The notes beneath the pieces were generated by a model. It worked only from the letters and a program-made list of their open reading frames with translations. It did no database searches and had not been told where the DNA came from. This document shows, piece by piece, positions 2,055-52,386 of a stretch of DNA of 64,000 nucleotides; within the stretch, counting starts at the first letter, position 1, and the number at the start of each line of letters is the position of its first letter. The translations under genes and the position numbers were made by a program. Origin of the DNA: Lepidodermella squamata (lineage: Eukaryota; Animalia; Gastrotricha); assembly GCA_047495785.1 (NCBI GenBank), contig JBLDXI010000013.1, forward strand, positions 3,596,001 through 3,660,000. The letters are read 5' to 3'.

Positions 2055-2597
2055 TCAAATCGATGCATACGAACTAACAGGCGTTTCTTGAATGGGATTG
2101 TCACTGCAGAAATTAGCAATCGGAGACGCCAGAATCATCAACAGCCGGAAGCCGTGGAAGAATAGGCTCATAAACGGCAGATAACTTGAGAATGATATCG
2201 GAAGTTCTTGAGTCCAATAGAAGACTATCGAAAGCAGCGCGGTTGTACAACAGGAGCTGAGTAACATTGCGATTGACACGAACGTCTTGAAACGACCTGT
2301 GTGGAAAGGGATATATTATTCTTCACGAAATATAAACATGAGTAGATGCCAACTGGGTAGGTCTGACGAACAGCATTGCATTAATATTGCGAAGCCAAAT
2401 TCCACGATTCCAATCAAAATCACGCTGCACGTGATGATGAAAGTTTCCTGAAGAATCCAGTGTTCTGCAACAGGGGCTGTTTTACGAACACCCGCCAATT
2501 CGGATAGGAACCACAGTTCAAAGATAACTGAGCCGATTGTTAGCGAGAAGAATACGTTGCAGAGCTTCTTCAATGTAGAATTCCACGGCAAGCACAT
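2055..2597 (-). CDS. Four-TM family member (2 exons, phase-1 intron ~2298-2353); identical copy at 10576-11118
   Basis: Two hydrophobic helices per exon; TM2 'GIVEFGF', TM4 'FHGFRL'; acceptor ccacacag. Confidence 0.7.
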
Positions 2598-3581
2598 TTC
2601 GAAGCTATGTCGATTGATCAGGAAAAATATAGGAATCCTTGAACTCGACTCCCACCTTGTGCCTTATGGACAACAACTCCTTGTCTGCAGCTGATAGTAA
2701 AAAGGCCTCAAATTATAATACAAGTATGTTGCCATTTTATTGCTTTTAAGCTGTCATGATTTCCACTTGAACGATTTTTGGGACTTCGTAGGCACTGTAT
2801 ATAAATTCGAAATTAAATTCCTTTACGTCGCGGTTTTGCGGTCACATGTGAGACGTGGTCAGTGCGGTGATATGAAAATTACGGAATTGCATGAGGCACA
2901 CGAGTCGCCTTTGAAAAAGGGGGTTCCTAAAGCGGTTTCAATAAGACAAATGATTCCAACGATGCCCTCCTTTATGGAAGTACATTGCACAAAGTTGCCA
3001 AACTGTCTCATTAGAAGCCATTTGCCACTTGCGGCGGTTCCCGTCCGCGCGACTCATTTGCGTACCCGAGAAGCATCGATTGGTTGCCGGCGGATAGCGA
3101 TCGAGGTTTGAGCTTCGTGAACCGCCACTGTTAACATCAAGAAGACCAAGAAGATTGTCACCAGTTCAACCACTCGAGATTTTGCGGCGACAAATCTGAC
3201 AGAGCCGATAGAGAGTCGTACTCTCTAGAATGTCGTACTCTACCTCTTTCCGAAGATTTTTCAAGTCTTTCCGCAACTTGTGAACATCAGTTTATTCTGG
3301 AATCAACACACTAGACCTGTCACGCAATCGCTTGAACCAAGGCTGAACATTTTTTTGTAAATAAAAAAGTAAACTTGATTTTGCTCGACACGCTTCATGC
3401 CTGCGCACCATGTAAGAGTCGAGCAGATCGCGTCGTTAGGCAGTGAGACAATCTTCCTGTTTATTCGATATTCAATAAGACCTAGGCTATATTCAGTCAA
3501 CTGATAGGGTTTCTAAAGGAATCGCGAATCTCTTGATCTGTCTTGTTGGTTAGGCGGCATCCGCCGATTTTGCATCAGTTC

Positions 3582-4059
3582 TTAGACTGACCCATCCGTC
3601 ATCTGTTCTGCTAGTTCACATTGCTCAATTGATTTGTTGTATCTGCGTACCATCCGAATGCCGTATAGTACGTCAATAATCGCTGCTATCACGGAGACCA
3701 TGAAAGATCGCTCTACTAAAGCATTGATCATGAAAGCGAGCATCACGATGACCATCGCCACTAGCAAAAATTGCCTTATAGCAGCACTTACTGCTATCCC
3801 TTTGCCTTAGAGAAGAAAAACGAAAATGACAATTGGTATGTAATATAAGCAAATATAAGATGTTTTTTGGTCATCAAAGCTTACAAAAAAACTTACATCC
3901 TTTTTTCAAAACGAGCTTCGCTAAGATGCAAGTATGGCAACATTCGATGATGGACACAACTCCAGTTACCACAAATCCCCAGATCAGTTTGTCCCCCCAC
4001 GAAATCCCGACTATTACACCAATAACTGCCAGTATCAGGATGGCAAATTTCGCAGCCAT
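3582..4059 (-). CDS. Four-TM family member (2 exons); identical copy at 12103-12580
   Basis: MAAKFAILILAVIGVIVGISWGDKLIWGFVVTGVVSIIECC... gtaagt donor; exon 2 ...IIDVLYGIRM. Confidence 0.75.
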
Positions 4060-4526
4060 ATAAACGCTGGAAATTGATCCGGAGACGATAATTTGTATCG
4101 CTGATCGCTCGATGGAAAAATTACTCTAGACGGCGGAGATAAAATTCCGGCTTTCAAAAGTGCTTCTACAATGTCACAAATTTCAATTTTGCAACAACCC
4201 ATGGTCATAAAATATGGAATTTTACGATTGGCGCACATGGTCAGAGGCTGTTCTGCAAAACAATTTCCGGAGTTCATAAATAATCAAGCTTTATTTGTTT
4301 CCTTCAAGCAAATCATTTTCTTTTGGTTATGCATTGAGAATGCTGTCGGCTGTGTGGTCGCCTATTAATATTGGACATTATACAGAGTGAGGAGGCATAA
4401 GCAAAAATAAGGGCAAGGGAGACTTCATGTTTCTCCGATAAAGTAGTCTTTGAAGAATTATCAATTCTGATTCTGGGGTTTCGAAACGATGCTTAGGTTC
4501 AGCAACCGTTGAGATCCCCTCAGTTC

Positions 4527-5064
4527 CTAGGCTGACGCATACAGCAATTCGGTTTTCTCTTCAGATTGCTCAGGTGTTTGTTTACATTTGCGCATCATCC
4601 GTATTAAATATATCATGTCAATAATCAGTAATATCACGAAGATCAACAAAGCTCCCTCGAAAAAGGCGAAAATCGAGGAAATGAGGATCGTGATGAACAT
4701 CGCCAGTAGAGAATAAGGCCCAAAAGCGGTTCCAATCGACATGCCTTCAAAAGAAACAGAAAAACCGTACCGAAAATAATGAAATTAATTGTATAAATAT
4801 GTTAGTTCTATAGACGCGAAGAATTTCAGAGCAATCACAAGCATGTCGCCTGTCAAGTGACACTTCATTTTAATCGAAATTGCGATAGATTGATACCGCG
4901 CCAACATTTTTGAACAGTTCAAGTTTTCAAGCTTGAAAATACTGCTTAAAAGGCTCATCATCAGTTTGCTACATTCTTTCTGGAAAATCCTGTAAATTTA
5001 GATCTTATTCCCACAGCCCACAGAACAACAGCGGATTTTCGGTTATCATTATTACAGTTTTCAA
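4527..5064 (-). pseudogene. 5'-truncated copy of the four-TM gene at 13048-13753 (exon 2 plus intron only)
   Basis: Exon 2 matches 13048-13265; exon 1 and the GTAAG donor (13586-13590) lie just outside the duplicated unit. Confidence 0.85.
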
Positions 5065-5175
5065 ATCTTGAAATTCAAAAATTCGTAAAAAAATCCAACT
5101 CAAAATGTAGCTCAAAATGTAATTATCCTTCGTAATGTGTAACTTTATTTGAATCGTTCGAAACTCCTTTGAAAA

Positions 5176-6744: not shown

Positions 6745-7343
6745 ATGAGCCTTCGATCGACCATCAGATTTCACCTATTAGCAAAAGCGTGCTGCGGACT
6801 ACTTGCTGTTTTGACGCTCATCTTCGCCGCCGCTGGCCTAGTTCTTACTGAGTATCATGACAAATTTCGAGGCGATAAAGTCTATTTCATCACTGGCTTC
6901 GCGATCGCAACAGCTTCGGCAGTTGTCGAGCTGTTTTTCGGCTGTTTTATCAACGAAATTACCCTTGGCCTGAATTTTTGTAATTAAATAATTTCAATTG
7001 AATTTCTTTTATTTTTCCAATTTCTTCAGGTGAATTTGTTGCCATGGGCGTGGTATTTATGGCCTCGGTTTTCAGCTTCATCGTTCTCGCAATGGCTATA
7101 TCAAGCGGGTCACTTATTGCTCAATCAAGCGCAGCAGGGTGTATCAACGGCTACGGCTGTGCCAACATTGTAGCAATCATCTGCTTAGCCCTATACGGCG
7201 TTCGCCTCATCGCTGCAGTAGTCGGTCTCGTCATCGCTATAACAGCCCTTATTTCATTTTGCTGCCTTGTCGCGAACGCTACGTCATTCGCAAGTGCTGT
7301 TGTATATCGACACGATGAATGCGGTGCGAATGATCACATTTGA
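6745..7343 (+). CDS. Four-TM family member (2 exons)
   Basis: DKFRGDKVYFITGF...VVELFF | ...AGCINGYGCANIVAIICLALYGVRL; AATAAA at 7344. Confidence 0.8.
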
Positions 7344-7407: not shown

Positions 7408-10190
7408 TTAACATGAGCATTGAGGCATTGCAGTCCACGTGCCGTCGTCATTGCAGATAATTTTCGAATCACCTATCATTTTGAAGCCGGTATAACAGCG
7501 GTAGACGAAAAAGCTGCCAGGCTTGTACACAGCCAAAGGATCGTCTATTCAAGAAATAATCGCTTTAGTCTGTTACCCTGTTTGCATACTCAACTTACTT
7601 CCATTGTATAAAATGTTTTCACTGACAATCTGAGAATAAGCCGGAGTTACAGGCTGGCTGCAGCGAGGTAAGCCAGGACTTGGAGGCCTAGTCGAGGAAG
7701 GCCCAGCAACGGGTGTTGTAGTCGGGACGGGCGTGGGTGCAGGGGGTGGCGGCGTTGGTGAGGGGGTCGGGGATGGCGTGGGTGGCAGGGTTTGCGTGGG
7801 CGCTGGAGTTGGCGCTGGTGTAGGTGCTTGAGTCGTTGGCCTAGTAGTTGGCGGCTGGGTGGCTGGAGCAGAGCCAAATCTAGCCGCTCGGCCAGGCTCA
7901 CAAACGTAGGTAGCTCCACTCCATGTACCATCGTCCAAACACGTCAATATACCAGTCTCGTAGTTATCACCAATGCACGCGTCTTTGTTTTGAGGTTAAA
8001 CTTCATATTTCATCAAGCGAAGAGACTTACATTCAATGAACTCGCCGATATTCATCACAGTATCTGAGCCGGCGGCAGATGTTAAAGGTGGGCCTTGTGG
8101 AACTTTGCAGCAACCTGGTTGGATCTGCTCTGTTTTCACCCCCTTCCCACTTGCTAGAACGCTTTGAGATGCGCTCTGGCAATACATAGCATTCGAGGTC
8201 CAGGTTCCATCAGCTTGACACCGCACTGTGCCCCAGATTGTAAAACCCTTCTGACAAGTGTATTGGACCTGGCAAATAATCCGTGACAAACCAGAATTGT
8301 AAATGACAATGGGACGCACCTTTTCACTTGTGTTGTAGCGGCTAGCAAGCGGAGCGCCGTTGTTCGACATGACTAGAGAATTTCGAGGCAGCTCCGGTTG
8401 CGGGCAGGTAGACTTAACAGGTGTACGTTTGCATTCCATCTTACTATCAGTCCAATTTCCAGTAGGTTGACACGTGACATTCGTACCACCCGAAACAAGA
8501 TTGAAGCCATCAACGCATTGAAAGTTGACAACATCGCCAATTTGGAAAGGGCTCTTCGACGGCGTGATTTGTTTAGCATTGCATGGCACGATCGGTAGCT
8601 TACATGTTATAGCTGTTATTTGAGACGCAAAAGCATTAAATAGGATGATGTGAAATAGGTTTTAGCTTACGCTTTGGTTTGCATGTGAATGCAGGCTTTG
8701 TCCAAGTGCCGTCGCTTTGGCACGACACCTGGGCACATGATGTATCACTGCATGTCGCTGTAATGTCGTAGCCAGGCTTGCATTCATAAGTTATACACTC
8801 GTCGACCATAAATTTGCCATCCGATGGCAGTTGCGAGATTTCCTAATGAAATTCAAATCTTGGAATGGCTGAATTTTGATATAATCCAAGCACAAACCAC
8901 AGCACCCGGTGGCGGCTGAGGCATGGTACAAGGGAACAAGTTAGTCGGAAGAGTTGCCGGGCCTTCATGAGGACCATTTCCTGTAGCGTTGCAAACAATT
9001 GTAGCTGGTGACCAAGTTCCATCCGGCTTGCAAATCAGCCTAAATATCGGGTTGTAATCGGTTAACTGTTGGGGCAAAATTTACTTCTCCACGGCTGGTT
9101 GAATAAAACCTGGGCTGCATCCAATGACGATGTCACATCCGACGGGAAATGTGACCTGTTGACTAAGGATTTGAGTGTTTGGCGGCAGAACCGGCGGGGA
9201 GCAGCTGCTAGCTATACTTCCATCTTTCACGCAGTAAACATTCGAAGTTGACCTAGGAACGATTTTGGGATTAGAGGGTTAGTAGCGAAGTTTGACAAAC
9301 CAGTTGCCACTAGTCATGCAAGCTACTCGTCCCTCGCCAACCTTTCGGTAGCCATCGTTACAGGCGTATTGCACTATAGATCCGACCGGGTAATTCCCAT
9401 CCAGCGCAGCCGGTGGAATGCTAAAAAAGATGTAATGATCCCGAAAATCGTTAGTTTCGGTTATAGTTTATACCTTTGAATAACGCCGTTACTTGGAGTC
9501 CTTGAACTCGGAATCGGAGGGCATCTTCCCTTTCCGGGCACTGGCTTCGACGTAGGCAGGCTCTTAGTTGTAGTCTGCCGTGTATTGCCGGACATTGGCG
9601 TAGCAGAAGTTGAAGGCGCCGCATTAGGATCTGGTGTTGAGACACCGGCTAGACAAGCTGATGGAAGAAATAGATTACGGCCGAAACAGCGCGGGGAAGA
9701 AAGAGGCTCGCAAATGCCAGGGTGAGTCAACTGGGCTGGTATTGTGACAGCAGGAATAGCCCCGGGGACCCAAGAGCAATTGGGATCTCCAAGTTCCTAA
9801 ACCGAAATTTCTCAACATTTCCTTTCTTGGCTATAGAAAGGCATTACTTGGCCATTCGTTCTACCATCGCCGTCGCTATCCAGCCGGCATAGACCAACCT
9901 GCCATCTACTCCCAGCGGCTTTGAAGTCAATGCCGAAAGGGTTTAGATTGCCACCGCCATCTACCAACTCATGACCAACTTGAAATTAAAGCGTTTTTTT
10001 CAGAATAAAAAAACAAATTTGAGCGATGATATATACCTCCTTGCCATGTAAGATTTCTGTTGCATGGGTTTGGCACACGTGCGCCATTTGGCAGAAGGTT
10101 CTGAAACTTGGGCAGGCTGAAAACCGCGGGGACTAATGTACAGCTGAACAGAAAGAGAAAAAACTTCGTACAAAAAGTCATTTTTTTCAT
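7408..10190 (-). CDS. Secreted protein: signal peptide + Temptin-like domain + Pro/Thr-rich linkers + 7 Sushi/CCP domains; multi-exon, no TM segment
   Basis: Spliced translation MKKMTFCTKFFLFLFSCTLVPAVFS-LPKFQNLLPNGARVPNPC...WQG|VGHELVDGGGNLNPFGIDFKAAG...LCRLDSDGDGRTNGQ|ELGDPNCSW...THPGICEP carries Temptin signatures (PNG, GVGH, NPFG.DF, DSDGDG.TNG.ELGDP.C.W, HPG.CEP). Seven C...Y/F.C..G(Y/F)...C...G.W...C repeats follow; ends PQCSC* (TAA 7408-7410). Confidence 0.88.
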
Positions 10191-10575
10191 CAACAGAAAT
10201 ATATCGTGTTCAGAGGCAGAAACAAAATTTCAGTACAAAATGCGATATATATGTTGGTTGGGGAGGGGTGGCCACGCATTAACGCATCGCCGTGGAATCT
10301 TCTTTTCAGTAACATGGCTAATATCTTTATTGATATGTACATCAGCATTTTATTAACGTAGGGGTGACGGTTTCGTGCGCGAAACTGCGCCCAGGTTTAA
10401 TGACAGAAAAAAAACGTGTGAGATATATTAAAACTAACGTTTCGGTGCGTTTCGCCCTTGTGTAATAAGAATCCAGCATATGAAAAACCGCAGAATATTC
10501 CTTTCAGAGAGTTTAGAACAACCAATTGTTGTTTACTTGCTATAAGGCAAGTTCATGAGATTCCAGATGTTTAGT

Positions 10576-11118
10576 TCAAATCGATGCATACGAACTAACA
10601 GGCGTTTCTTGAATGGGATTGTCACTGCAGAAATTAGCAATCGGAGACGCCAGAATCATCAACAGCCGGAAGCCGTGGAAGAATAGGCTCATAAACGGCA
10701 GATAACTTGAGAATGATATCGGAAGTTCTTGAGTCCAATAGAAGACTATCGAAAGCAGCGCGGTTGTACAACAGGAGCTGAGTAACATTGCGATTGACAC
10801 GAACGTCTTGAAACGACCTGTGTGGAAAGGGATATATTATTCTTCACGAAATATAAACATGAGTAGATGCCAACTGGGTAGGTCTGACGAACAGCATTGC
10901 ATTAATATTGCGAAGCCAAATTCCACGATTCCAATCAAAATCACGCTGCACGTGATGATGAAAGTTTCCTGAAGAATCCAGTGTTCTGCAACAGGGGCTG
11001 TTTTACGAACACCCGCCAATTCGGATAGGAACCACAGTTCAAAGATAACTGAGCCGATTGTTAGCGAGAAGAATACGTTGCAGAGCTTCTTCAATGTAGA
11101 ATTCCACGGCAAGCACAT
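10576..11118 (-). CDS. Four-TM family member (duplicate of 2055-2597)
   Basis: Same translation at +8521. Confidence 0.7.
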
Positions 11119-12102
11119 TTCGAAGCTATGTCGATTGATCAGGAAAAATATAGGAATCCTTGAACTCGACTCCCACCTTGTGCCTTATGGACAACAACTC
11201 CTTGTCTGCAGCTGATAGTAAAAAGGCCTCAAATTATAATACAAGTATGTTGCCATTTTATTGCTTTTAAGCTGTCATGATTTCCACTTGAACGATTTTT
11301 GGGACTTCGTAGGCACTGTATATAAATTCGAAATTAAATTCCTTTACGTCGCGGTTTTGCGGTCACATGTGAGACGTGGTCAGTGCGGTGATATGAAAAT
11401 TACGGAATTGCATGAGGCACACGAGTCGCCTTTGAAAAAGGGGGTTCCTAAAGCGGTTTCAATAAGACAAATGATTCCAACGATGCCCTCCTTTATGGAA
11501 GTACATTGCACAAAGTTGCCAAACTGTCTCATTAGAAGCCATTTGCCACTTGCGGCGGTTCCCGTCCGCGCGACTCATTTGCGTACCCGAGAAGCATCGA
11601 TTGGTTGCCGGCGGATAGCGATCGAGGTTTGAGCTTCGTGAACCGCCACTGTTAACATCAAGAAGACCAAGAAGATTGTCACCAGTTCAACCACTCGAGA
11701 TTTTGCGGCGACAAATCTGACAGAGCCGATAGAGAGTCGTACTCTCTAGAATGTCGTACTCTACCTCTTTCCGAAGATTTTTCAAGTCTTTCCGCAACTT
11801 GTGAACATCAGTTTATTCTGGAATCAACACACTAGACCTGTCACGCAATCGCTTGAACCAAGGCTGAACATTTTTTTGTAAATAAAAAAGTAAACTTGAT
11901 TTTGCTCGACACGCTTCATGCCTGCGCACCATGTAAGAGTCGAGCAGATCGCGTCGTTAGGCAGTGAGACAATCTTCCTGTTTATTCGATATTCAATAAG
12001 ACCTAGGCTATATTCAGTCAACTGATAGGGTTTCTAAAGGAATCGCGAATCTCTTGATCTGTCTTGTTGGTTAGGCGGCATCCGCCGATTTTGCATCAGT
12101 TC

Positions 12103-12580
12103 TTAGACTGACCCATCCGTCATCTGTTCTGCTAGTTCACATTGCTCAATTGATTTGTTGTATCTGCGTACCATCCGAATGCCGTATAGTACGTCAATAA
12201 TCGCTGCTATCACGGAGACCATGAAAGATCGCTCTACTAAAGCATTGATCATGAAAGCGAGCATCACGATGACCATCGCCACTAGCAAAAATTGCCTTAT
12301 AGCAGCACTTACTGCTATCCCTTTGCCTTAGAGAAGAAAAACGAAAATGACAATTGGTATGTAATATAAGCAAATATAAGATGTTTTTTGGTCATCAAAG
12401 CTTACAAAAAAACTTACATCCTTTTTTCAAAACGAGCTTCGCTAAGATGCAAGTATGGCAACATTCGATGATGGACACAACTCCAGTTACCACAAATCCC
12501 CAGATCAGTTTGTCCCCCCACGAAATCCCGACTATTACACCAATAACTGCCAGTATCAGGATGGCAAATTTCGCAGCCAT
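12103..12580 (-). CDS. Four-TM family member (duplicate of 3582-4059)
   Basis: Same translation at +8521. Confidence 0.75.
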
Positions 12581-13047
12581 ATAAACGCTGGAAATTGATC
12601 CGGAGACGATAATTTGTATCGCTGATCGCTCGATGGAAAAATTACTCTAGACGGCGGAGATAAAATTCCGGCTTTCAAAAGTGCTTCTACAATGTCACAA
12701 ATTTCAATTTTGCAACAACCCATGGTCATAAAATATGGAATTTTACGATTGGCGCACATGGTCAGAGGCTGTTCTGCAAAACAATTTCCGGAGTTCATAA
12801 ATAATCAAGCTTTATTTGTTTCCTTCAAGCAAATCATTTTCTTTTGGTTATGCATTGAGAATGCTGTCGGCTGTGTGGTCGCCTATTAATATTGGACATT
12901 ATACAGAGTGAGGAGGCATAAGCAAAAATAAGGGCAAGGGAGACTTCATGTTTCTCCGATAAAGTAGTCTTTGAAGAATTATCAATTCTGATTCTGGGGT
13001 TTCGAAACGATGCTTAGGTTCAGCAACCGTTGAGATCCCCTCAGTTC

Positions 13048-13753
13048 CTAGGCTGACGCATACAGCAATTCGGTTTTCTCTTCAGATTGCTCAGGTGTTT
13101 GTTTACATTTGCGCATCATCCGTATTAAATATATCATGTCAATAATCAGTAATATCACGAAGATCAACAAAGCTCCCTCGAAAAAGGCGAAAATCGAGGA
13201 AATGAGGATCGTGATGAACATCGCCAGTAGAGAATAAGGCCCAAAAGCGGTTCCAATCGACATGCCTTCAAAAGAAACAGAAAAACCGTACCGAAAATAA
13301 TGAAATTAATTGTATAAATATGTTAGTTCTATAGACGCGAAGAATTTCAGAGCAATCACAAGCATGTCGCCTGTCAAGTGACACTTCATTTTAATCGAAA
13401 TTGCGATAGATTGATACCGCGCCAACATTTTTGAACAGTTCAAGTTTTCAAGCTTGAAAATACTGCTTAAAAGGCTCATCATCAGTTTGCTACATTCTTT
13501 CTGGAAAATCCTGTAAATTTAGATCTTATTCCCACAGCCCACAGAACAACAGCGGATTTTCGGTTATCATTATTACAGTTTTCAACTTACATTCTTTTCC
13601 AAAAGCGAGTTTCCCTTCAAAGCATTGATGAAAAATTTCAATAGCGGACACAACTCCAGCTAGTAAAAATCCCAAGATCAGTTTGCCTTGCCACCAGATT
13701 CCAACTATTGTACCAATGACTGAGAGTATCAGAATCGCTACTTGTAAAAGCAT
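13048..13753 (-). CDS. Four-TM family member (exons 13591-13753 and 13048-13265)
   Basis: MLLQVAILILSVIGTIVGIWWQGKLILGF...SAIEIF...GKE T|GC MSIG...IYLIRM; GTAAG donor and tttgaag acceptor, in frame. Confidence 0.8.
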
Positions 13754-14122
13754 TTTTAGCTGAAAAGCAATGAAGAAATAGCTTGTATCATTAATCCTTT
13801 CGTTTATAAGTTACTTAAAACTGACTTGCCAAGATTAAATCGTGGCTTTTCCTGTTTCATATTTCATTATTCCAGCACCCTATGGTCATAAAATGAAACT
13901 TCACGACTCGACCACATGGTCAATGACTCTTCTGAAATACCTAAATGTTCATCAAATTATGGAAAATATTGAATCCCATGAATATTCTTTTTTGAAATTT
14001 ATTCATTCATTTATTTATTTATTTATTTAAGGAGCCACAACGCCCGGAAGAGGACAGCTCAGCTCACGCCAAGTCAGAATAGGCATCTTCTTTGATTTGC
14101 GCATTGCAGTCATTGCTCGCCC

Positions 14123-14705
14123 CTATGCAATATCGTCGGATATTTCCTTCAAGTTGCTGCTCTCCATATTATAGCCATAATCAACCTGAACAGCGAGGCC
14201 GATAAGCAGGCGTGAACAGTGAATGATTAGGTCCACGAAAAGCAGTAATACACCGCTCCTGAAGTAGAACGAATCCATTCGCAGATTCTCAGATGCGATG
14301 GACGATAACAGACCGATAATCACCAAGGAGCTCAACAACATTAAAATACCAGCGAAACTCCGCAAACATGAAGCTGCAATGGAAATGCATGATCAAACCT
14401 TTAAACATAGGACAGCCAACCACTTTACCTGGCTCTGACGAATCCTGAATGAGACGAAAACAGTAAAGGAAAAAGGTCTCAAGCATCGAGATCGAAATGG
14501 CAATGCTCAACAGAATTACAGCCTTCTCTCGAATAGGCCGATATCTTTCGCCGTAAGTTTCTGGATCGTATAGCACCCAAAAATTAGCTAAAACACAGGC
14601 CTCAGCAAACAACGCCAGCAAGGTCATCGACTTGAACAAATTGCGTCGTCTTTCGAAGGTTTCCAAGCATGATGGAAGGTGTTTGCTGGTGTAGGCCATG
14701 AACAT
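14123..14705 (-). CDS. Four-TM family member (intron 14374-14428)
   Basis: TM2 'SMLETFF', TM4 'IHCSRLL'; phase-1 gtaaag...ttgcag intron joins the two predicted ORFs. Confidence 0.7.
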
Positions 14706-14889
14706 CGTGAAGCTCTTCGAAAAAGTTCTATCACATTGATAGATCAACAATTCAGCTTAGAACACCTGTATAGCTACATTATCATTTCAATTATTCAATG
14801 AGACAGAATTTATAGCCTCATTTTTTATTTGCAGGTGCTGATACATGCGAATAGACCTAGGATTCGGACGTCAGTTTTCTCTCAGGATC

Positions 14890-15505
14890 TTAAATTGGTT
14901 CGTATGACGATCTGTTATCTTCACAATGTTTCGTGCATCGCATTATCATTTGAAGTGTGATTCGAAGAACATACAGCGCCAAAAGATTGATGGATATGAT
15001 AAATGCGAGAGCAAGGTCAGGTGTTAATATTCCGCAAACTGCGGTCAATATTACTGTGAGGAAAATTCCGATGCAGACTATGATTGACGAGGCTGACCAG
15101 AACACTGGACTGTCGATTACACATCCACCTTCAAAATCAAAAAGACGCATGTCTTCGAAATTGTCTGTTAATGGTTTCCTTGTTGGAATTCCTACCTTTT
15201 CGACTGTTTCTACATTTCGCTTGGCAGAAATTGAAATTTTCCAGGAGAGAAAGCACCGTGGTTATTGTGAATGTGATTAGAAATGGAAGCCTTGCTGGTA
15301 GAGAATTTGCCACGGCGCAGCCGATTAATCCGATTATTGATAATATCAGGGTGGCCGTAGCTGCAGCGATATCTACTACGTACAGTTTTCGGCTCGTTTC
15401 CGATACGATGTCCTCTCCTGAAGCTTCGACCGGCATCGCCTTGTAGTTATAAGGACGGGAGGGCCATTCGTACGGTGACTTTAATTTGCTCAATGACTGA
15501 CCCAT
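14890..15505 (-). CDS. Four-TM family member (2 exons, ~43-nt intron)
   Basis: TM2 'SLLENF', TM4 'ALYVLRI'; gtagga...ttcgaag joins the two ORFs in frame. Confidence 0.65.
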
Positions 15506-16189
15506 TCGCAAACGGAGGAGAGATTGCAGAGAACAAAAGGCTTATCCCTAGCCTTCCCTTATATATAGTGTCTTCACTTATTATTCAATAGATAAAATAT
15601 TATTATGGGCCTTGAGTGTAGGCTGGAATGTTGGATACTCATGAGAGAAGTACTGAATCTCCCCGGACCCAGATGCTCTTCTGATTCATCAAAGAATTCA
15701 TGAAAATAATAGTTGAATTCTCCTGGTTCACTCACCCTTATGATCGGTGAAATGAACACGCTAATACTTACCGGGTAATGATGATTTTTTCTGATTTACC
15801 TGGCTGAAAGCTGATGGATTTTGCAGCATTTTTCGATTTTGTCTGACGCTTATTTCAAGTATTTTTAATATATTACGAGTCTTGACATCATAATGGCAGG
15901 AAAAATGTCTGATATATTGTAACGTGTCGCCGGTCGCCGAAGGGAAATCAATGGAACCTTTGAAAAATGTCTCCGTTTACAAGCCTTTCCACCTAGAACC
16001 TAGATCCAGCCGTTCCGGCACCAAATTTACTCTTATAATTGAGGTATATTTCAGAGCAACAACAAAAACCTTCCATTTACCCCAGTTTAGGCCTATTGTG
16101 CTCACAATAAGTGGTGTGAAATGTTGAAGGCAGCCTAATACATTGATTAGGTTGAGCCAGCACAACAAAAACAAGCAGTAGATTGAACA

Positions 16190-18643
16190 ATGCTGTACAC
16201 GTCAATTAAGGCTTTACCATTTCTCATTGTCGTCATAGGTAAATTCGCCCTCGCCGAATTATTGAACTTCTCCGATCGGCTTAACGTCACGGTTTTAGAA
16301 GAGGATGATTTGATCGAAAGGCCATCAATCGAGCAGTTGATGAACTTATCGTCGAATCAGAATCTAACTCTATTTGATGAAGAAGAGCTACCTGATGGCC
16401 GTCGTTTACTCACATTCACTCTTCAAATCAGCGGCTACCAGTTGATGGGCTACGATTTTACTTTTACGGAAGACGAGACTGAAGCTATCAAGTACGCATT
16501 GAGCGGCCAAATACTAGACGATATTCCTAAGTTTGATAAGCTGGCCATGCAAGTGATTAAACGTAGCGAGAAGATCGGCAATCAAACAGGTTACGCGGCG
16601 TGCATGAAAGGTCTCGCCGAACAATTTGACTTCAAGGAGGTGAGAAGGGAGTCTTTAACTATCTGTTGACCAGCTAATACTGATCGACAAAATTACGTAG
16701 AGAAACGGTGTCGAAATTGGCAACTTTTCCAGCCGATATTTGTGGTTTGATGGTCAGTTCATGACCATGGTGGAAGGCTTCGGCATTTTCAACAACCTGG
16801 ATGAAGCTCAGAGATATTGTTTGATTTACACTCCCTCAGAGAAATGCCTTATTCATTTATTTAGTTTGCTTACACGACATACTCAACAATACAATCATAA
16901 TGTTGGCTCCAACTTCAACCTATGCCGTCGAGGCAGCAGGTGGAAACAGGAGAATTGGCAAGCGTAAATTGACCCTCGATCTAACAGATAGAGTTTCTCA
17001 ACTGGAAGAGTGCATTGTCGAACATCCGAAAGGGTTTTTTACCATCTACGACATGGAGGGTAATACTTCCATATCGGATGAGGCAGAACCGTTGACCTAC
17101 CCATGCGGCAACTTGAACGAAGACGAGGTACTTCAGGCTAAAATGATCGCTCATTTTCTAGTTGGATATAACTAACAGGTGAATGGCGGTTACGGCATCG
17201 CAGCTGACTGCATGGATTACGCTATCCAAACGCAAAAATGTCTGGCAAAGCATGGTGAGGAATTATGACTCTTGACTAAAGCTAAGTGAAATTGAATCTC
17301 CACAGTGAATATGCACGACTTCGGTTTCATCACAAATGGAAAGCCTCTGCGAATTCACATCAATTACGGGCAGATGAAACCTATAGCATTTTGGAACGAG
17401 AACGGCATTTTCTTCGGTGAGACAACCTCCTGTGGTTGATTCAGGTTGATAAGCAATTTCTTCATTATTAGGCAACGGAGATGTATCGAACGAATATCCT
17501 TCTTGCTCGAGCATCGACTCTGTTTCTCATGAAATCGGCCACGCCTTGACAGCTCGCTTTTCAGGGCTCTACTACTCCGGAGAAATGGGCTGTATCAATG
17601 AAGGTGAGTACAAGGAATAACCATATCAGTGAATAGGTGAAGTTGATTCTAATTCAGCCTTCAGCGACATCACTGCAATGATGGTTCGAGCTTGCGTTCG
17701 AGGTACAACAGATTGGCTGTTTGACATCGATGCACAGAAGGCCAGAGACGCTGCGAGCCGTAATCTTGTTCGGAATCTGAAAAAGCCGACCTCAGATGCT
17801 CAGCAGATAAAGAAATACAGCGAGTACAGGCCAAACATTGACGTACACGTCTGCAGCGGGATTTATAACCACGCTTTCTACTTGCTGTCCCAAACTCGAG
17901 GATGGGATATCTACTCGGCTTACCAATTGTTCTATGGCGCCAATAGATTTAAATGGGTAGATTTTACCAAAATGGCCGACGGACTATGTGGAATCCTCAC
18001 CTATGCTAAATCGCTAGATCTGCCATCGAAAAAAATGGCAGATATCAGAGAAGCCTTTGGAAAAGTTGGTTTGTTCATCAATGGAACGAAATGCGACCTG
18101 TCAGATGGTTTCGAGAAGAATCCCGATGGATTTATAACACTTGACAACTGCGTTACCACTGAAGGCATTCAAGGAGAATCAACTGATATCTATCATTTCG
18201 TCCACGAAGTGAAAAAGAAGCCCGGCAAACCCGCCCCGTCCAAACTAATCATATCTTTGAGGCTGCCTAAGAGCCAAATAGAAAATGATGATGTTTTAAA
18301 CTCAGAGGACAATGACGACTCCGATTGTGATGATTGCGATGATAACGATATCGATGCGGATGATAATTTGGATGATGACGAAGACAGTGGCGAGATGAAA
18401 GTAGATTTACTGATTTATTATGGTATGAAGAACATACCAAACGGTGGTGACATCAAGTACGGGGAATTCGACGCAGTTATAGCCAGACAATCTGAATCGA
18501 TACAACTGGTGATAAAGTGCCCTCCGATCGGGAATTACACCTTTGTAATCGTCTCGACCGGGCAAGGTGCCTACAGCGATGTTTCTTTCAATGTATGCCA
18601 CTTGTCCTCAGACTCAGATGTCTGTGAGGTAAAACGTTTATAG
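16190..18643 (+). CDS. M4 (thermolysin/elastase/vibriolysin-like) zinc metalloprotease precursor, 7 exons, C-terminal PPC-like domain
   Basis: Exons ~16190-16639, 16701-16818, 16865-17127, 17179-17254, 17306-17416, 17472-17603, 17658-18643. Motifs GGNRRIGK, VNGGYG, HINYG..IAFW..FFGNG, HEIGH, SGLYYSGEMGCINEAFSD, DVHVCSGIYNHAFYLL; N-terminal signal peptide. Confidence 0.93.
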
Positions 18644-18921: not shown

Positions 18922-19513
18922 TCAGCAATAGTAATAGGTTCTTTTTATTTCTTGATCCATATCTTGAACGACCTGATATTGATATCGTGGACACTTGCAC
19001 TTGACACACAGGCAGTACCCGGCGTAATACAAAACTCGGAAGAATTGTGATAAGGCGATTAATATGGCTAGAATATTGACAGCAAATAGGGCTGCAGCGC
19101 GAATTTCAAAAGACTCAACTATTGCGTCCAGCAATAATAGGAATGAAATAAGGGTTGCGAGAGTTGTCAAAGCTGTCATAAACCTACCTAACAGGAAAAC
19201 GCAGGCATTCAAAATTTATAAATGACCGGCTAGAGTTTAACTTACTGAAGCAGAAACAACAGCTGTTCTCTTCTTCGTCGTCGCTATCTTCATCATCATA
19301 GTTTTGGCCATAATTGCTCAAGAAAAAGTCCACAAAAGCCACGGCAATGATTATCGCAAAACCAGCTGTGAATTTACTGCGATCGCCATGATATCTGATA
19401 CCCGTGATCTCATTACCATAGAGCAAAAGCAAAGCGATTAGTGAGAGAAGAACCGGGAAGCTGTTAGTGAAAGACCAGCACCAATTTTTGCGGCTGCACT
19501 CCTTATTGCACAT
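18922..19513 (-). CDS. Four-TM family member (2 exons)
   Basis: RYHGDRSKFTAGF...FVDFF; gtaagt...gttag phase-1 intron; TM4 'SQFFRV'. Confidence 0.75.
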
Positions 19514-42126: not shown

Positions 42127-42912
42127 ATGTCATCAGCCATGATAAACAGCAGGCTGTCCGAACACCGTGGCAGTATCATCAGCCTATTCGCGCCGATTTA
42201 TAAACAGCACAACCATGCTCATTCGTTGTCGATGCAATCGAACACCTCGGGCCTAACGAACGGCACAACAGATCGCAAGCACTGTAATCACGGCGCGAAA
42301 ATTCGCACTGCAAATATTTGTTCAGCTTTTTGCGCACTTAGCTTCGCGACGGTCGGTTACATCCTCACAAATCAGGGCTTTTACCGCGGTGAGGGTAGCG
42401 GCACTTTTTCCACTATTTTTCTCGTCATTATTGGCCAGTCATTGGTTGAAATAGCCCTGGCTGTTTTGATCTCATTTTGCCAGCTCAACTCCTACTATGC
42501 CGGTCAATCTTCAATGTCATGTGGTGAGCTAAGTTTTGTTATTTTATTAAAAATAAAAAATAGCAAAAATATTGGAAATTTAATTTGGTTAATTTCTTAA
42601 ATTTTATCAAATAATTATCAATAAAAGGCTGAAAGGTCGTTTTGTGTTCATTTAACAGCGACTATCATTTCGACGGCAAGTGCGATCGCGTCGTCAATAA
42701 TTGGTTTCGTGCTGCTGATTTGCCTGCTCATAACAACTGATCGAGATTTCGAGCGATCGCCAGCCGCTGGTTGTACCGGAGGCTACGGCTGTGCGAATGT
42801 GATGGCGATTGTTATTGCTGTCATCTATTGGTCTCGTTTCTACATCATTGCGATGGCCTCAATCGGTTATCTAATGTCTCAATGGCGCGAAGTTGTAATG
42901 ACACCTCCTTAA
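42127..42912 (+). CDS. Four-TM family member (2 exons; start codon uncertain)
   Basis: FYRGEG...LVEIA | AGCTGGYGCANVMAI...YWSRF. Confidence 0.8.
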
Positions 42913-43242: not shown

Positions 43243-44117
43243 ATGAGCAACCGTCGTGAGTCGCGAAGCGAGCAGATGAGAATTGAAGAGTACAGCGACG
43301 ACCGAAGCCCGTCTCACGGCTTTTTTGTGATCAATGTCATTTCAAGCGCTATCCCACTGGCCTTTTCCGTTATAGGCCTCGGCCTGACGTATGGCGACAA
43401 GTACCGTGGTGGCCGCAATCACTTCATCAGCGCATTTTGGGCTATCACCGCGATGTCGATCGTTGAACTCATTCTTGCTGTGATCATTTGCTGCTGTTGT
43501 TTCCGGGCGTTTTGTTGCGGCAAGGATAAATGCTCTGTTTATTGCGGTAAATTTGCCACATTTTTCACCGTCATAAACGCGTCATAGGTTCCACAGGGAT
43601 TATATTTCAGAATACTTCTACCCAAAATCGATTGAAAAAATACTTAAAAATTTGCCTGATTCGAAATTTTGGAGCAAATTTATAGTTTCAAAATCTTAAA
43701 AAATGCGGGACTTAATTTAATTTTAAGGAGGGTTTTTTTATTTTCCTACTAATTTTTTTAATGGAGTTTAAAAATTGAAATTTAATTTAATTTAATTTAA
43801 AATTTTTTAGAAATATATTTCTTCATTTGTAAAAGCCAAGGCTATCATTTTATAGCTCTTAAAATTCTTAAAATTTTTTTCCAGCCACCTCGATCACTGC
43901 TGCCACATCGTTCCTCGGATCTTTCATTGGCCTGGCTCTGTTGATCGTCGCCGTTTACAGCGCATCGGAGACACCTTACGCCTCGCGAGCCGGCTGTGTC
44001 GGCGGCTTCGGCTGCGCCAACATCGTCGCGTTTTTCGGCTCGTTCTTCTACGCCATCCGAGTCTTCGTCATCATGATCGCTTTCTGCTGCTGCATCTGTT
44101 GTTGCCGCAAGAAATAA
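43243..44117 (+). CDS. Four-TM family member (exon 2 at 43885-44117)
   Basis: DKYRGGRNHFISAF...IVELI...CCCC | AGCVGGFGCANIVAF...FYAIRV...CCCICCCRKK*. Confidence 0.85.
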
Positions 44118-44385: not shown

Positions 44386-46800
44386 ATGGCAAATAAGTGT
44401 GCGTTTTCTCGAATTTTCTGCTTAGTCATTTCGACTAGTTTATTCAAGGTAATCCTCGCAACTCAGCGATCAGAGCTCAATATTTTGACTTTTATGACAC
44501 TTACTGGCCGAGAGCCAAGTTCAGCTAAAGCTTGCGTACAAACAGTTAAATATGTTATTGAAATCGCCAACAATCGATCAGACATCCTACCTGATTACAC
44601 GCTAAATCTCACCATAGTCGACGAGGCAGTTGCGGGCACGGCTGGTCCAGTCGGATTGATGCGCTTTTTAAATAACGAAAAAGGGCTTATTTCACCTGTT
44701 ATTTTCGGCCCATCGGCCACGTGTCAATTGTCCTCCCTAATAGCGAGACAAAATCACTTGACTCAAATTTCAATCGGCTGTTTCGCGGCGAGAATTGTCT
44801 CAAATCGGCGGCTTTATTCGAATCTCTACCGAATCCAAGCCCCATTAGCTTACCTGGCTGGTCCTTTACTCGTTCTAGTGAAGCAAATTGGGAAGTGGCG
44901 GCAAATGGCGATAATTACGTCATTGAACACCGTGAATGATTTCGAACTTGCTCAAAGCCTTCATTCCGCTTTGGTGACAAATGGAGTTGAAGTCGTGGAC
45001 TATATCGGCGCGGAAGACATTACCATAGGAATGATGCAAGCTCTTAAAAAGAGTAGAGCACGAGTTTTTCTGCTAATTACGAGCCAACCGATTCTGTGCT
45101 TGAGATTTTTTTGCATGACGAACGAATTCGGAATCAACTCAACGAATTACGCATTCATTTTACCCCTTATCTGCATGTTCGCCGTAGACAGGATAAATGA
45201 AAATGCTCTGCCTAACAGATGCTCGACAAAGGTTATTCAGAGGCAACTGCAGATCACACTCTGGATCGGCACGCCGCAGGAATCAGTAGAAAAGCAGAGC
45301 AATTCCTCGCTGGGAATAGGCGAGGAGGAATTTACGAGTTACGCCACCAACTATTTCGGAATCAACTCTTTGCCGGTTGATTTTGACACACGGCATGGCT
45401 GCTATGACGCTATGCTTGCCATCGTAATGATCCTAGACAAAACCGACAGGATTTTGAGGGAGCAGCATAATTTGACTCTCAAAGACTTCGCCCTACAGCC
45501 GAAGTTAGTTGGATCGGTCACGAATGATAGTGCAGCTACGTTGAACATCACTGGGCTCCGAATTGGCCAATTGGCGTACTCCCCGAGAACCCTAGAGGTA
45601 GTCGGGGACTCTAGTTGGATCATGCAATGGTCCCCGAAAACCAAAAATCGCTACACGTATAAAATCATGAGAATCGACGAAAGCCTGCCACTATCCAACT
45701 TGGCATCTTACGAAGTCACTCTGCGTAGTAAAATCATGTGGTCGACAAAATCAGGCCAGCCACCGAAAGATCTGTCCGAAATAGTTCATGTAGTTTCGAA
45801 ATGTCCTCTTTGGCTTTTTTGCTTTATTGCTGGTTTAGCTATTTTGTTTACAGCAATTGAGACATCTCTGGCTGCAGTCATACTGAAGCATAGGAATAAG
45901 CTGTCCGGAAAGTTCTTCGACATCAAAAATGGTGTAATCTTAGCGATTGGCTGCTTGTTAACGAATGCATCGGCAGTTATCGAGGTAGCAGGGTCTTCAA
46001 TGCTTCTACCCGTCGATTTTCAGCGGATTCATTGTTCGATAGCGGTTGCAAGTGGAGTGATAGGCCTATCAATTATCAATGGCTCTGTTTTCTCTAAAAT
46101 AGCCTATTTTTATCGAACTGGCAGAGCTTTGGCATGGAAGCAAGCTAAACTGGCGGTTAAGGCGAAACTAGCAGCTGTGATGTATAGGCGGGATACTGGT
46201 AAACGTCAACAACCAACACTTAGTGCCGAAGAACTTGCTAAACTGTCTAAATCAATCACAATAGGAACTGCACTCTTAGCTGCTGTCGGCATTGTAGTAT
46301 CTGGATTATGGATTTTCGCCGTAGATCCCATCAAGTTCGATCTAATGACTTCACCGATTGACTTTGATGAGTCAATTGATAGCTATTTCGAAACTTTGAT
46401 TTACAGCTGCAAGTCGGAGTTCTTCGGCCAGTGGGCTTACGGTTTAGCGGCACTACATATCGCTCTACTCATTCTAGGCTGCTTTTTCGCTTACGAATGC
46501 TACATGATTCATTTCCCGAATTCTGTAGTGTTGGAAAGAAAAGTCACGAGCTTCGCCGTTTACAACGCTCCTGTCATCATAGTGGCGTTTGCTATATTGA
46601 TCAATCTTGCTCCCTTCGGCTTCGGTCGCCACGTGGCGTTCGCATTTGGACTTTTAATTCACTCTTCTTCGATTTTCGCTTTTATCTTCTACCCGGTCTG
46701 GACGCGACAATGGCCATCTGTTCCTCAACCGAGTGAAAACGCCCTCGCTATCGTTGCCCGTGCTTTTAAATTGCCGGATACTCCTAAGAACAGCACATGA
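44386..46800 (+). CDS. Class C GPCR, GABA-B-receptor-like (Venus flytrap + 7TM, no cysteine-rich domain), intronless, 804 aa
   Basis: Signal peptide; 'ANNRSDILPDYTLNL', 'IFGP', 'YSNLYR', 'LKKSRARVF', 'YDA', 'W...PPKD' running straight into TM1; TM motifs 'GSVFSK', 'W...DP', 'YSCKS', 'GCFFAYE', 'FAVYN'. Confidence 0.88.
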   Translation: MANKCAFSRIFCLVISTSLFKVILATQRSELNILTFMTLTGREPSSAKACVQTVKYVIEIANNRSDILPDYTLNLTIVDEAVAGTAGPVGLMRFLNNEKGLISPVIFGPSATCQLSSLIARQNHLTQISIGCFAARIVSNRRLYSNLYRIQAPLAYLAGPLLVLVKQIGKWRQMAIITSLNTVNDFELAQSLHSALVTNGVEVVDYIGAEDITIGMMQALKKSRARVFLLITSQPILCLRFFCMTNEFGINSTNYAFILPLICMFAVDRINENALPNRCSTKVIQRQLQITLWIGTPQESVEKQSNSSLGIGEEEFTSYATNYFGINSLPVDFDTRHGCYDAMLAIVMILDKTDRILREQHNLTLKDFALQPKLVGSVTNDSAATLNITGLRIGQLAYSPRTLEVVGDSSWIMQWSPKTKNRYTYKIMRIDESLPLSNLASYEVTLRSKIMWSTKSGQPPKDLSEIVHVVSKCPLWLFCFIAGLAILFTAIETSLAAVILKHRNKLSGKFFDIKNGVILAIGCLLTNASAVIEVAGSSMLLPVDFQRIHCSIAVASGVIGLSIINGSVFSKIAYFYRTGRALAWKQAKLAVKAKLAAVMYRRDTGKRQQPTLSAEELAKLSKSITIGTALLAAVGIVVSGLWIFAVDPIKFDLMTSPIDFDESIDSYFETLIYSCKSEFFGQWAYGLAALHIALLILGCFFAYECYMIHFPNSVVLERKVTSFAVYNAPVIIVAFAILINLAPFGFGRHVAFAFGLLIHSSSIFAFIFYPVWTRQWPSVPQPSENALAIVARAFKLPDTPKNST

Positions 46801-47159
46801 CTTGATAGAGTATTTGATTGAGTAAAAATAAACGTCGGTTTTGACCACGAATTCGCACTTGAAAAATATTCGAAGAATAGAACCTTTTACCGCTAACGGA
46901 CGGATGGTCCCCAGAAATTCGATTCCTCCCGCGAAAATCTCGACACGTTGCATTTTTATTTTTAGAAACAATTTCCAGATAAGGACAAGCACTCGCAATG
47001 CCCGTTGAATTTGTTGTTATTGTTGTTTGTGTTTTCCTCTACTTATATTTCTAAATTCATGTTATCACAACGCGGTCATTCCTTATCTCGATGAAATGGC
47101 CAGCTTACTATAATACTATAACGAAATGTTCATAAACAAAATTTTTCAACCCAATAAAC

Positions 47160-47766
47160 ATGGTGAGCAAAAGTTCGTCCCATATGGGTGGGACTCGATT
47201 TGTCCGCAGCTACTGGCTCAAACTAGCGGTCGGGATGCTACTATCTGGCATCCTGCCGATGTCGTTCGCCATAGCCGGACTTGCTCTCGCTCAAGATGGC
47301 TGGAATCGCGGCAATTCGAAGGACACAGTTGTCGCCTTTGCCTTTTCATTCGCGTTCTCCACTATTGAATTCGTCAGTGGCTTCTTAATTTTGTGGTGCT
47401 GTTTCCCAAGGTCAAAGGAGAAGTATCTTCAAAATGAGATAGGAAAGAAGCGTCAGCGTGATGGTAAGATAAAAGTCAAACTACGCCTTAATTGTTTAGA
47501 TTTATATTTGTTTGTTTACAGCGACGATTTCAATGCTTGTCTTATCACTCTCTGGCTCGATTGCAGCGTTCGGCCTTTTGATCTACGCTCTAGTAAATGC
47601 GACAAGCGTACCCCTGACATCAGATGTGGGATGTTTGGACTTCGGATGTGCTAATGTGATGCTTATCGCTTGTGCTTCGTGCTATGGAAATCGTGTTTTG
47701 TACGTCCTTTTGCGTTTATACTACATCTTGTGCTGCCTAAAAACTCCCACTGCTGGAGATCGCTGA
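47160..47766 (+). CDS. Four-TM family member (2 exons)
   Basis: WNRGNSKDTVVAF...TIEFV | VGCLDFGCANVMLI...CYGNRV. Confidence 0.8.
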
Positions 47767-50802: not shown

Positions 50803-51128
50803 CATCTGTAACAAATAGATTTTCTAAAATATCCTAGTTGGATGAATAATTGGAGCAATAAATGTCCTACTCCACACCTTGGCTCGGCGTTGTATTCTGA
50901 GTTTGCAATTCGCGACAGCTCTTTGTCATGTGTCGCGGAAAGTCAACAAAGGACAAAAATTGTTGATAATAGTTACGCTAAGCGCTAAGATACTGGGCCC
51001 ACCACTGATTGCAGCTATGTGCATCCTTTTCAGCAAACCATTAGAGAACGCAGGCGTTTATTCAAATCCAAGATGTATACGTAATTATTTCGAGCAAGCT
51101 GAAAAGCAAGTTGTAGCGAGTTGATCGT

Positions 51129-51693
51129 CTACTTTCTTCGTGCTCGGCAACAGCAGCAGCAACAACACAGGAAAAAAGCGACCGCTAAGGCTCGGGCTCC
51201 GTAGAACACAGCGCAAATTATAGCCATAATATTGGCACAACCGTATCCATTCGCACAACCTGCGGCCTCCGACATCTCTACGCCATCCGCACTAACGATG
51301 GCGATGACAAGCAAAACAAACCCGATCAAGGATCCTAAGATTGTCGCGATAGATGACAATATTGTTGCTATTAGGCAAAATTTGAACTAAAATTCCACCA
51401 TGAATTCAAATTTGAAATTCTTTACCGCATAGCATTGAGCAGATGCCTCGACCACTGCAAACTGCTCTGAGGCAACAGCAGCAAATAACGACTGCTAGAA
51501 CAAGCTCGGTAACAGACAGGCCGATTACAACGGCGAATGCATTGATCATTTGGTCTTTGCTGCCCCGAAATTGGTCATTGAAAGTCAACGCAAGTCCAGC
51601 ACTTGCGAATGCAAGAGGCAGCACGCTGGAACCCAAATCGGATCCACGGCTGCTCTTTTGCTGCTTCTTGCTTTTTCCTGATTCAACATCCAT
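51129..51693 (-). CDS. Four-TM family member (2 exons)
   Basis: DQFRGSKDQMINAF...VTELV...CCCC | AGCANGYGCANIMAI...FYGARA...CCCCCCCRARRK*. Confidence 0.85.
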
Positions 51694-51811
51694 TTTACTA
51701 TGCCGTGTGTAATTGAAAACAACTCATTATACCAAACTGCCAGAATGTTATGCTGGGAAGTAGGGAGATAAGATATTCAAATACTTCATTTTATTATCAG
51801 CTCGCACTTAT

Positions 51812-52386
51812 CTAGTGCTTTTTTGATCGGCAACAAGAAAAACAACCGCAAAGCAAGTGAACTCCGACAAGAACAGCTCTACCGCCGTAAAATAGGGTGC
51901 AAACGATTGCTAGGATATTCGCACATCCGAAACCATTGACACAACCAGCTGTTTCAGTCATCTCAACGCCATCCGCGCCGGATAGGGCAGTGACTAGTAG
52001 GACGAAGCCAATAACAGATCCAATAATTGACGCAAAGGCAGACATGATAATAGCTGAAAGTAATAAAAATCGGGAAAGTGTTAGAAATTCAGGATGATAA
52101 ACTCACTGCAGACCATAGAGCAGAATCCTCTATCGCAGCAGGCGACTCTGAATCGGCAGCAGCAAATCACGATAGCTAGCATGATTTCAATTGACGAAAA
52201 GGAGATTACGAAGGCGAAAGCGTTGACCATGTCCAGCTTTCGGCCGCGATATCTATCGACTAGAGTTTCTGCCATTCCAGCGCTTGCGAATGCAAGGGGC
52301 AAAATACTGGTCCCGTGGTGACATCCTGTTGTTCCTCCGTGTTTCTCCTCCTTCTTCTCACCGGCTTCTTCGTCGTCACTAGGCAT
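51812..52386 (-). CDS. Four-TM family member (2 exons), tandem paralogue of 51129-51693
   Basis: DRYRGRKLDMVNAF...SIEIM | AGCVNGFGCANILAI...FYGGRA. Confidence 0.85.

Follow-up and report, generated by a model that had tools for sequence, protein, structure and literature searches.

Small four-helix membrane proteins of the MS4A, tetraspanin, claudin, TARP and MARVEL groups are key organisers and channel accessories in vertebrates. To our knowledge, the invertebrate counterparts of such four-helix proteins have been mapped poorly. Here we analyse a 64,000-nucleotide (nt) stretch of the genome of the gastrotrich Lepidodermella squamata (contig JBLDXI010000013.1, positions 3,596,001 to 3,660,000; hereafter the window), which contains nine secure members of one family of small proteins with four transmembrane (TM) helices and probably five very divergent ones. 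They represent an undescribed and fast-evolving family with an unusually clear signature, consisting of a conserved outer hairpin, charges within the membrane and long cysteine tracts, and a relative of the animal carries an apparent fusion of three units. Signature and fusion offer direct handles for testing whether the proteins oligomerise, are acylated or might act as channels or accessories. The family is also one among many lineage-specific orphan membrane families of small invertebrate genomes.

The closest described systems each resemble the family in part. MS4A/CD20-like proteins (PF04103; including sarcospan and FceRI-beta) likewise have four TM helices, cytoplasmic ends, a tiny first and a short second outer loop, the latter with a disulfide, as well as tandem gene clusters and a tendency to oligomerise. 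The architecture of CD20, with four TM helices, cytoplasmic ends and short loops, is recovered in our proteins by hydropathy, the Lys/Arg distribution, a structural model and a C-x5-C motif that we take as a predicted disulfide. Unlike MS4A/CD20, however, the family is marked by an RG in loop 1, GCxxG(Y/F)GCAN before TM4, a Glu in TM2 and YxxR in TM4, and PF04103 was never listed by hmmscan for the exons or seven homologues up to an expectation value (E) of 1. The MARVEL proteins (synaptophysin, synaptogyrin; PF01284) share the four-helix membrane bundle and a similar size, but the conserved outer hairpin and the poly-Cys tracts are not MARVEL features, and hmmscan gave no match up to E = 1. 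Tetraspanins (PF00335) have in common with the family four TM helices, a possible organiser role and juxtamembrane cysteines, which in tetraspanins are palmitoylated. They are defined by a CCG motif within a large second outer loop; we rejected membership, as the second outer loop of the family has ~20 residues with C-x5-C, no CCG and no Pfam match. The claudin/PMP22/TARP/LHFPL proteins (PF00822, PF13903) also have four TM helices, and the claudin superfamily includes channel accessory subunits. In claudin-type proteins, the first outer loop is large, has beta-sheet structure and bears a W-GLW-C-C signature, and membership was likewise rejected: here, the first loop has ~10-14 residues and no Cys, and there is no Pfam match. 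Orai (PF07856) was also discarded: the sole match was exon 1 of g12, whose 14.4 bits fall short of the cut-off of 25.

The four-TM genes are genuine, and the family is transcribed. Candidates were collected by a six-frame hydropathy scan as paired open reading frames (ORFs) with two hydrophobic helices each, and splicing was modelled by enumerating in-frame GT-AG pairs. The resulting 14 distinct two-exon genes encode proteins of 126-216 amino acids (aa) with two TM helices per exon. In all 14, a canonical GT-AG intron in phase 1 (50-338 nt) separates TM2 from TM3; the donor is ambiguous in g01 alone, where every option is in phase 1. Acceptors consist of a T-rich tract followed by a terminal CAG or AAG. 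An earlier sequence-only reading of this DNA had described just this layout, with the same intron and a size of ~125-210 aa, and the models bear it out. In a public run with RNA-like behaviour (X1), contigs lie on the exons of g09, g10 and g11, while the intergenic DNA and an 804-codon receptor-like ORF between these genes are uncovered. One spliced X1 contig matches the g09 intron (42524-42658) exactly, skipping 135 nt bounded by GT..AG. At the g10 intron (43547-43884), two X1 contigs stop at 43546 and 43884, with loose ends that continue into the opposite exon. At least two predicted introns are therefore confirmed as modelled. X1 contigs also cover g11, with no splice joint reported. Chance ORFs were rejected as an explanation of the genes.

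Nine of the genes, g04 and g06-g13, constitute one family. Membership was assessed by all-against-all phmmer searches and by leave-one-out profiles, in which each of the nine was recovered by a profile built without it at E 1e-17 to 1e-55. On the plus strand, g04 lies at 6745-7343 (exons 6745-6979 and 7030-7343; 182 aa; intron 50 nt; leave-one-out E 5e-25) and displays the motifs FRGD, VVEL, GCINGYGCANI and YGVR. The minus-strand genes g06 (18922-19513; exons 19246-19513 and 18922-19187; 177 aa; intron 58 nt; E 2e-17) and g07 (20299-21015; exons 20652-21015 and 20299-20585; 216 aa; intron 66 nt; E 2e-20) are core members without the C-x5-C loop. They are followed by g08 on the same strand (21159-21765; exons 21465-21765 and 21159-21403; 181 aa; intron 61 nt; E 4e-31), with the variant loop HCYDDYGCVNI. 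Three further members are encoded on the plus strand: g09 (42127-42912; exons 42127-42523 and 42659-42912; 216 aa; E 4e-34), g10 (43243-44117; exons 43243-43546 and 43885-44117; 178 aa; E 2e-47) and g11 (47160-47766; exons 47160-47463 and 47522-47766; 182 aa; intron 58 nt; E 2e-28). On the minus strand, g12 (51129-51693; exons 51426-51693 and 51129-51367; 168 aa; intron 58 nt; E 2e-55) ends in a run of seven cysteines, and its tandem neighbour g13 (51812-52386; exons 52107-52386 and 51812-52053; 173 aa; intron 53 nt; E 5e-51) is 55% identical to it. A six-frame scan of the window with the core profile revealed no additional member.

The other five genes, all on the minus strand, are far more divergent. 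We regard g01 (2055-2597; exons 2354-2597 and 2055-2296; 161 aa), g02 (3582-4059; exons 3897-4059 and 3582-3805; 128 aa), g03b (13048-13753; exons 13591-13753 and 13048-13265; 126 aa) and g14 (14890-15505; exons 15196-15505 and 14890-15128; 182 aa) as putative remote members and g05 (14123-14705; exons 14429-14705 and 14123-14373; 175 aa) as a marginal one. The introns of g02 (donor GTAAGT), g03b, g05 and g14 (AAG/GTAGGA...TTGAAG/) measure 91, 325, 55 and 67 nt, respectively, and g01 has four hydrophobic helices. Against the core profile in HMMER, g05 is marginal (E 8e-4 with Z=13, that is, in a 13-sequence search), and g01, g02, g03b and g14 are not significant. The sequence-only reading had counted at least 14 paralogues of one family and suggested building a profile from the spliced proteins; the 14 distinct loci stand, whereas just the nine core genes are statistically secure on one profile.

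This leaves room for the alternative that the set is heterogeneous, in which the core nine are one family and some or all of g01, g02, g03b, g05 and g14 are unrelated four-TM look-alikes. We consider this unlikely, but it carries appreciable weight. Besides the failed profile matches, it draws on a probability of just 12% in an hhalign comparison of g01/g05 with the core, on the lack of relatives of the five on the contigs of the metagenomic relative introduced below, and on the lack of expression evidence for them: a run search over 12050-15550 listed no RNA-like holder. The five genes nevertheless share the two-exon layout and a phase-1 intron that falls at one and the same point of the topology, and they lie within the same cluster. 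Each of them combines a TM2 Glu with [Y/H]xxR in TM4 (IVEF and HGFR in g01, IIEC and YGIR in g02, AIEI and YLIR in g03b, MLET and HCSR in g05, LLEN and YVLR in g14). Aligned with the core by hhalign, g02/g03b/g14 reach a probability of 78% (E 2e-5), and the alignment is collinear, with the TM2 Glu and the TM4 YxxR in register. When the five are compared with every six-frame ORF from the window and the relative's contigs, their best matches, though weak, land on core-family exons. Among the five, g02 and g03b are clear paralogues (43% identity, E 1e-25), g14 is weakly tied to g03b (phmmer 4e-4), g05 reaches 3e-5 with g01 and, with the core gene g06, 1e-4, and g01 connects to g05 only (4e-6 in a 14-sequence search). 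Because of these weak profile links and the common phase and position of the intron, homology to the nine core genes is probable for g02/g03b/g14 and plausible for g01/g05.

As far as is detectable, the family is restricted to the window animal and its close relatives and matches no described family. Database queries were single exons or the intronless homologue P0002. With hmmscan, run up to E = 1, no exon translation and none of seven homologues matched Pfam above its cut-offs. The sequences of solved structures in the Protein Data Bank (PDB) gave no match, ESM Atlas feature and structure look-ups returned sub-threshold, unrelated rows only, and a literature search for a described family of this kind yielded nothing relevant. 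A word-index search found nothing with the exon-2 alignment; with the full-length alignment, it found one metagenomic relative of the window organism and nothing else. The widest search compared the nine-gene exon-2 profile (HMMER) with 1.84 billion representative proteins and produced ten matches at E <0.001. Nine of these are genuine family members: one was recovered from a different sequencing run, the other eight from metagenomes assembled from a single sample set. As this search used the second exon only, more distant relatives may escape it. That the sequence-only reading did not recognise the family is thus in keeping with these searches. The strongest match, P0001 (E 3e-42), a hypothetical protein of 1,824 aa from the stick insect Dryococelus australis, was rejected as a 17-fold repeat. 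Its repeat holds a DCDNVVAIVITITY(I/N)LR-like stretch that mimics only TM4 of the family; the protein is not a relative.

The metagenome contigs with relatives have 37-43% G+C, carry animal genes and come from a relative of the window organism. Here too, the family is arranged in tandem clusters: five contigs together carry no fewer than twelve units. Outside the window genome, the TM2/TM3 intron is missing from some members, as seen at L001:9877-10527 and on L003, L005, L007 and L009. P0002 has no intron; five genes have a phase-1 intron inside TM4, just past GCANIxAI(C), and none between TM2 and TM3; the TM2/TM3 intron itself occurs in one gene and in the fusion gene. The latter (L005:16457-18316; exons 16457-16772, 16846-17367, 17432-17959 and 18021-18316) appears to be a natural three-unit fusion, predicted as one ORF of 553 aa and 12 helices. 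In it, three complete four-helix units follow one another, connected by linkers that are acidic or basic, and each of its three introns is in phase 1 at the TM2/TM3 position, one of them with a GC donor. If real, the fusion hints at an oligomer in which the units act next to one another.

Hydropathy, charge distribution and the model of a homologue point to a four-TM topology with a cytoplasmic N-terminus. Three segments, namely the N-terminus, the loop from TM2 to TM3 and the tail, hold the Cys runs as well as a concentration of Lys and Arg, which places both ends and the Cys tracts on the cytoplasmic side and the RG loop and the C-x5-C hairpin outside. Outer loop 1 has ~10-14 residues, no Cys and an almost invariant Arg-Gly, and the predicted outer loop between TM3 and TM4 has ~20 residues and closes with the GCxxG(Y/F)GCAN hairpin. 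Conservation was measured over 20 full-length members from the two species as the mean BLOSUM sum-of-pairs score per column; it peaks in outer loop 2 (2.5) and outer loop 1 (1.4), followed by the helices (0.6-1.1), and is ~0 in the cytoplasmic parts. Across these 20 members, the Gly of the RG pair and the Asn at the start of TM4 are invariant, and the Arg of the RG pair, both cysteines of C-x5-C and the flanking Gly are nearly so.

The motifs listed by the sequence-only reading reappear in the gene models. A (Y/F)RG...F..(G/A)F-type loop, assigned by that reading to most members, is present in all nine core genes. The subgroup with GCxxG(Y/F)GCAN(I/V) comprises g04 and g09-g13, with a variant in g08; g06 and g07 lack the motif. 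Both TM2 and TM4 are followed by Cys runs, the longest being the seven of g12, in agreement with the maximum given by that reading. Each of the 14 window genes has an acidic residue (Glu or Asp) in TM2 and a [Y/H/Q]xxR in TM4, both in 14/14. In the relative, five genes have both residues, P0002 and two others have Glu without Arg, two units of the fusion gene have neither, and Arg without Glu was not securely seen in any member. A buried Arg dependent on a counter-charge would agree with this distribution, which comes from a small sample of related sequences, and a Glu-Arg pair is plausible. Over the aligned family members, the polar or charged residues within helices are Glu in 14/20, Asn in 20/20 and Arg in 14/19.

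For structural comparison, we folded P0002 with AlphaFold2 from an alignment that comprised 37 sequences and exon fragments of the family. The model is confident in its core; it has a mean predicted local distance difference test score of 82.4, with blocks above 90 across the helices, and a predicted template modelling score of 0.69. It consists of four long helices, with a beta-bridge over the C-x5-C stretch right before TM4.

Our preferred, still tentative reading is that the proteins are palmitoylated, oligomerising four-helix membrane organisers or accessory subunits, with the conserved outer face as a docking surface. The juxtamembrane Cys tracts would be palmitoylated, and the proteins would assemble side by side as homo- or hetero-oligomers. 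These would organise the membrane or serve as accessory subunits, along the lines of the sarcospan, MS4A, MARVEL and tetraspanin proteins. The conserved outer face would offer a fixed docking surface, and a buried network of Glu, Asn and Arg may hold the bundle, or a partner helix, together.

Several points weigh against this proposal. The disulfide of the outer-loop C-x5-C, which is probably formed given the near-invariant Cys pair and the modelled beta-bridge, and the palmitoylation of the Cys tracts on the predicted cytoplasmic side, which is plausible, are both deduced from sequence alone. The RNA nature of X1 is a guess, and the fusion gene is predicted from ORF continuity and splice consensus. 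The folded protein is a homologue from another organism rather than a window gene, and lacks the TM4 Arg. Foldseek, which the sequence-only reading had suggested running on predicted structures, found no confident PDB match for the P0002 model, the best being synaptogyrin at an E of just 0.07. An exhaustive structural aligner ranked sarcospan (Z 11.8), synaptophysin (11.3), uroplakin (10.4), PRPH2 and synaptogyrin (both 9.9), CD20 (9.7) and FceRI-beta (9.3), all under the value of ~13 that the guide of the tool gives as the trust line for helical bundles. Soluble or designed four-helix bundles (ROP, AhlC and designed proteins) reach Z 10-10.5, on par with the tetraspans, so that the MS4A-type rows (Z 9.3-11.8) are no better than unrelated helical bundles. 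The same limit applies to the MARVEL rows (Z 9.9-11.3) and to the tetraspanin-type uroplakin and PRPH2 (Z ~10), and the rows for TARPs, GARLH4 and a Cav gamma subunit are weak. Since scores are low and unrelated bundles equal them, the fold is that of a tetraspan bundle of generic type, with the MS4A/sarcospan and MARVEL architectures as the closest fit, in line with the likeness to MS4A, MARVEL and similar topologies that the sequence-only reading had drawn, while membership in any of these families is not supported.

Judged by sequence identity, the family evolves fast. The best match of any member across species is 41% (g12 against a gene of the relative), beside a pentameric channel gene (25038-26497, minus strand) that is ~90-96% identical between the window organism and the relative. 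The orthologue of the channel gene lies at L007:11482-12724; the identity of the aligned protein segments is mostly 88-100%, whereas that of the DNA is just 69-75%. Three family units of the relative stand beside this orthologue, in the orthologous place of g06-g08. In a maximum-likelihood tree, the supported groups come from single genomes, namely g12 with g13, g06-g08 (with g06 joining g07 and g08 at supports of 96/91), two pairs of the relative and the three fusion units, and the labels for genome of origin cluster far more strongly than they do after shuffling. As the deep forks are mostly unresolved and the branches long, the tree shows turnover or very fast divergence rather than a dated history. 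Birth-and-death evolution, as suggested by the sequence-only reading, fits this pattern.

Synonymous sites are saturated between most core paralogues, so that the ratio of nonsynonymous to synonymous substitution rates (dN/dS) was not computable among them and the duplicates must be old. In the pair g02 and g03b, where dS is unsaturated at 0.48, dN/dS is ~0.94, with frames and Glu/Arg motifs intact in both genes; this could reflect relaxed or diversifying selection on the pair. Constraint on the family is visible at present: in a second haplotype of g10 (run X2), 5/5 variants are synonymous third-position changes, and X1 differs from g09 by two synonymous sites and one F85Y, which together gives 7 synonymous variants against 1 conservative change.

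The same observations bear on other possible functions. Tetraspan-type proteins such as Orai and CALHM form channels, and the family could consist of the pore-forming subunits of a small oligomeric channel, with Glu of TM2 and both Asn and Arg of TM4 lining the pathway and the disulfide-stapled, Gly-rich G(Y/F)G hairpins forming the outer mouth. The conserved polar and charged residues within the helices, the outer mouth as the most conserved region and the three-unit fusion, which suggests a fixed stoichiometry, are all consistent with a pore. Yet the TM3-TM4 loop is too short for a pore helix plus filter, Arg or Glu is replaced in several relatives, the P0002 model is a closed four-helix bundle and the sole channel-family match is the sub-threshold one to Orai-1, which makes such a pore rather unlikely. 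A broader version, that the proteins are a new oligomeric channel class or a dedicated accessory subunit of the adjoining pentameric ligand-gated channels, seems to us doubtful; here the stapled hairpins and the buried Glu/Asn/Arg would act as a permeation or gating element, and the fusion would fix the stoichiometry. MS4A proteins, in turn, can function as chemoreceptors, and the sequence-only reading had suspected a chemosensory or immune role. Rapidly diversifying receptors, each paralogue with its own external ligand, would account for the tandem cluster on both strands, the grouping of paralogues by genome instead of into one-to-one orthologues, the low cross-species identity next to a well-conserved neighbour and the elevated dN/dS of g02/g03b. 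However, the predicted extracellular loops, ~30 residues in total, are the most conserved part of the proteins, and variation is found in the cytoplasmic segments and helices. This distribution argues against a ligand-diversified receptor, as do the nearly all synonymous allelic variation of g09 and g10 and the age of most core duplicates, and we regard the receptor role as quite improbable.

The start of the window contains an exact direct repeat, in which a single mismatch-free run at an offset of 8521 joins 1-5064 to its second copy at 8522-13585 (5,064 bp; period 8,521 bp). The copies of g01 and g02 at 10576-11118 and 12103-12580 are identical to the first ones and, like an exon-2-only copy of g03b (4527-4784, minus strand), are therefore not extra paralogues. 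The repeat end at 5064, which corresponds to 13585, falls 6 nt short of the g03b exon-1 donor, hence the first copy is without exon 1. Alleles covered by the same data show numerous differences, yet the two copies match perfectly, so the repeat is either very recent or an assembly artefact.

The window as a whole is gene-dense animal DNA with short introns and 39-47% G+C per 4-kb stretch. As the sequence-only reading had noted, family members lie on both strands among unrelated genes, which include an ORF with an ANF_receptor domain, two M4 peptidase genes, a cytochrome P450 and a Sushi-repeat gene. The pentameric channel gene, which the family adjoins in both species, is much better conserved than its surroundings and is flanked by four-TM family clusters in both. 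The ORFs with the C-terminal domain of an M4 (thermolysin-type) peptidase have opposite orientations (17678-18643, plus strand; 29985-30962, minus strand). The receptor-like ORF of 804 codons between g10 and g11 (44386-46800, plus strand) is a single exon with an ANF_receptor ligand-binding domain and ~7 hydrophobic helices; it had no Pfam match to a seven-transmembrane domain, and a word search at E 1e-10 gave no relatives. Differences between this ORF and the second haplotype are confined to third codon positions.

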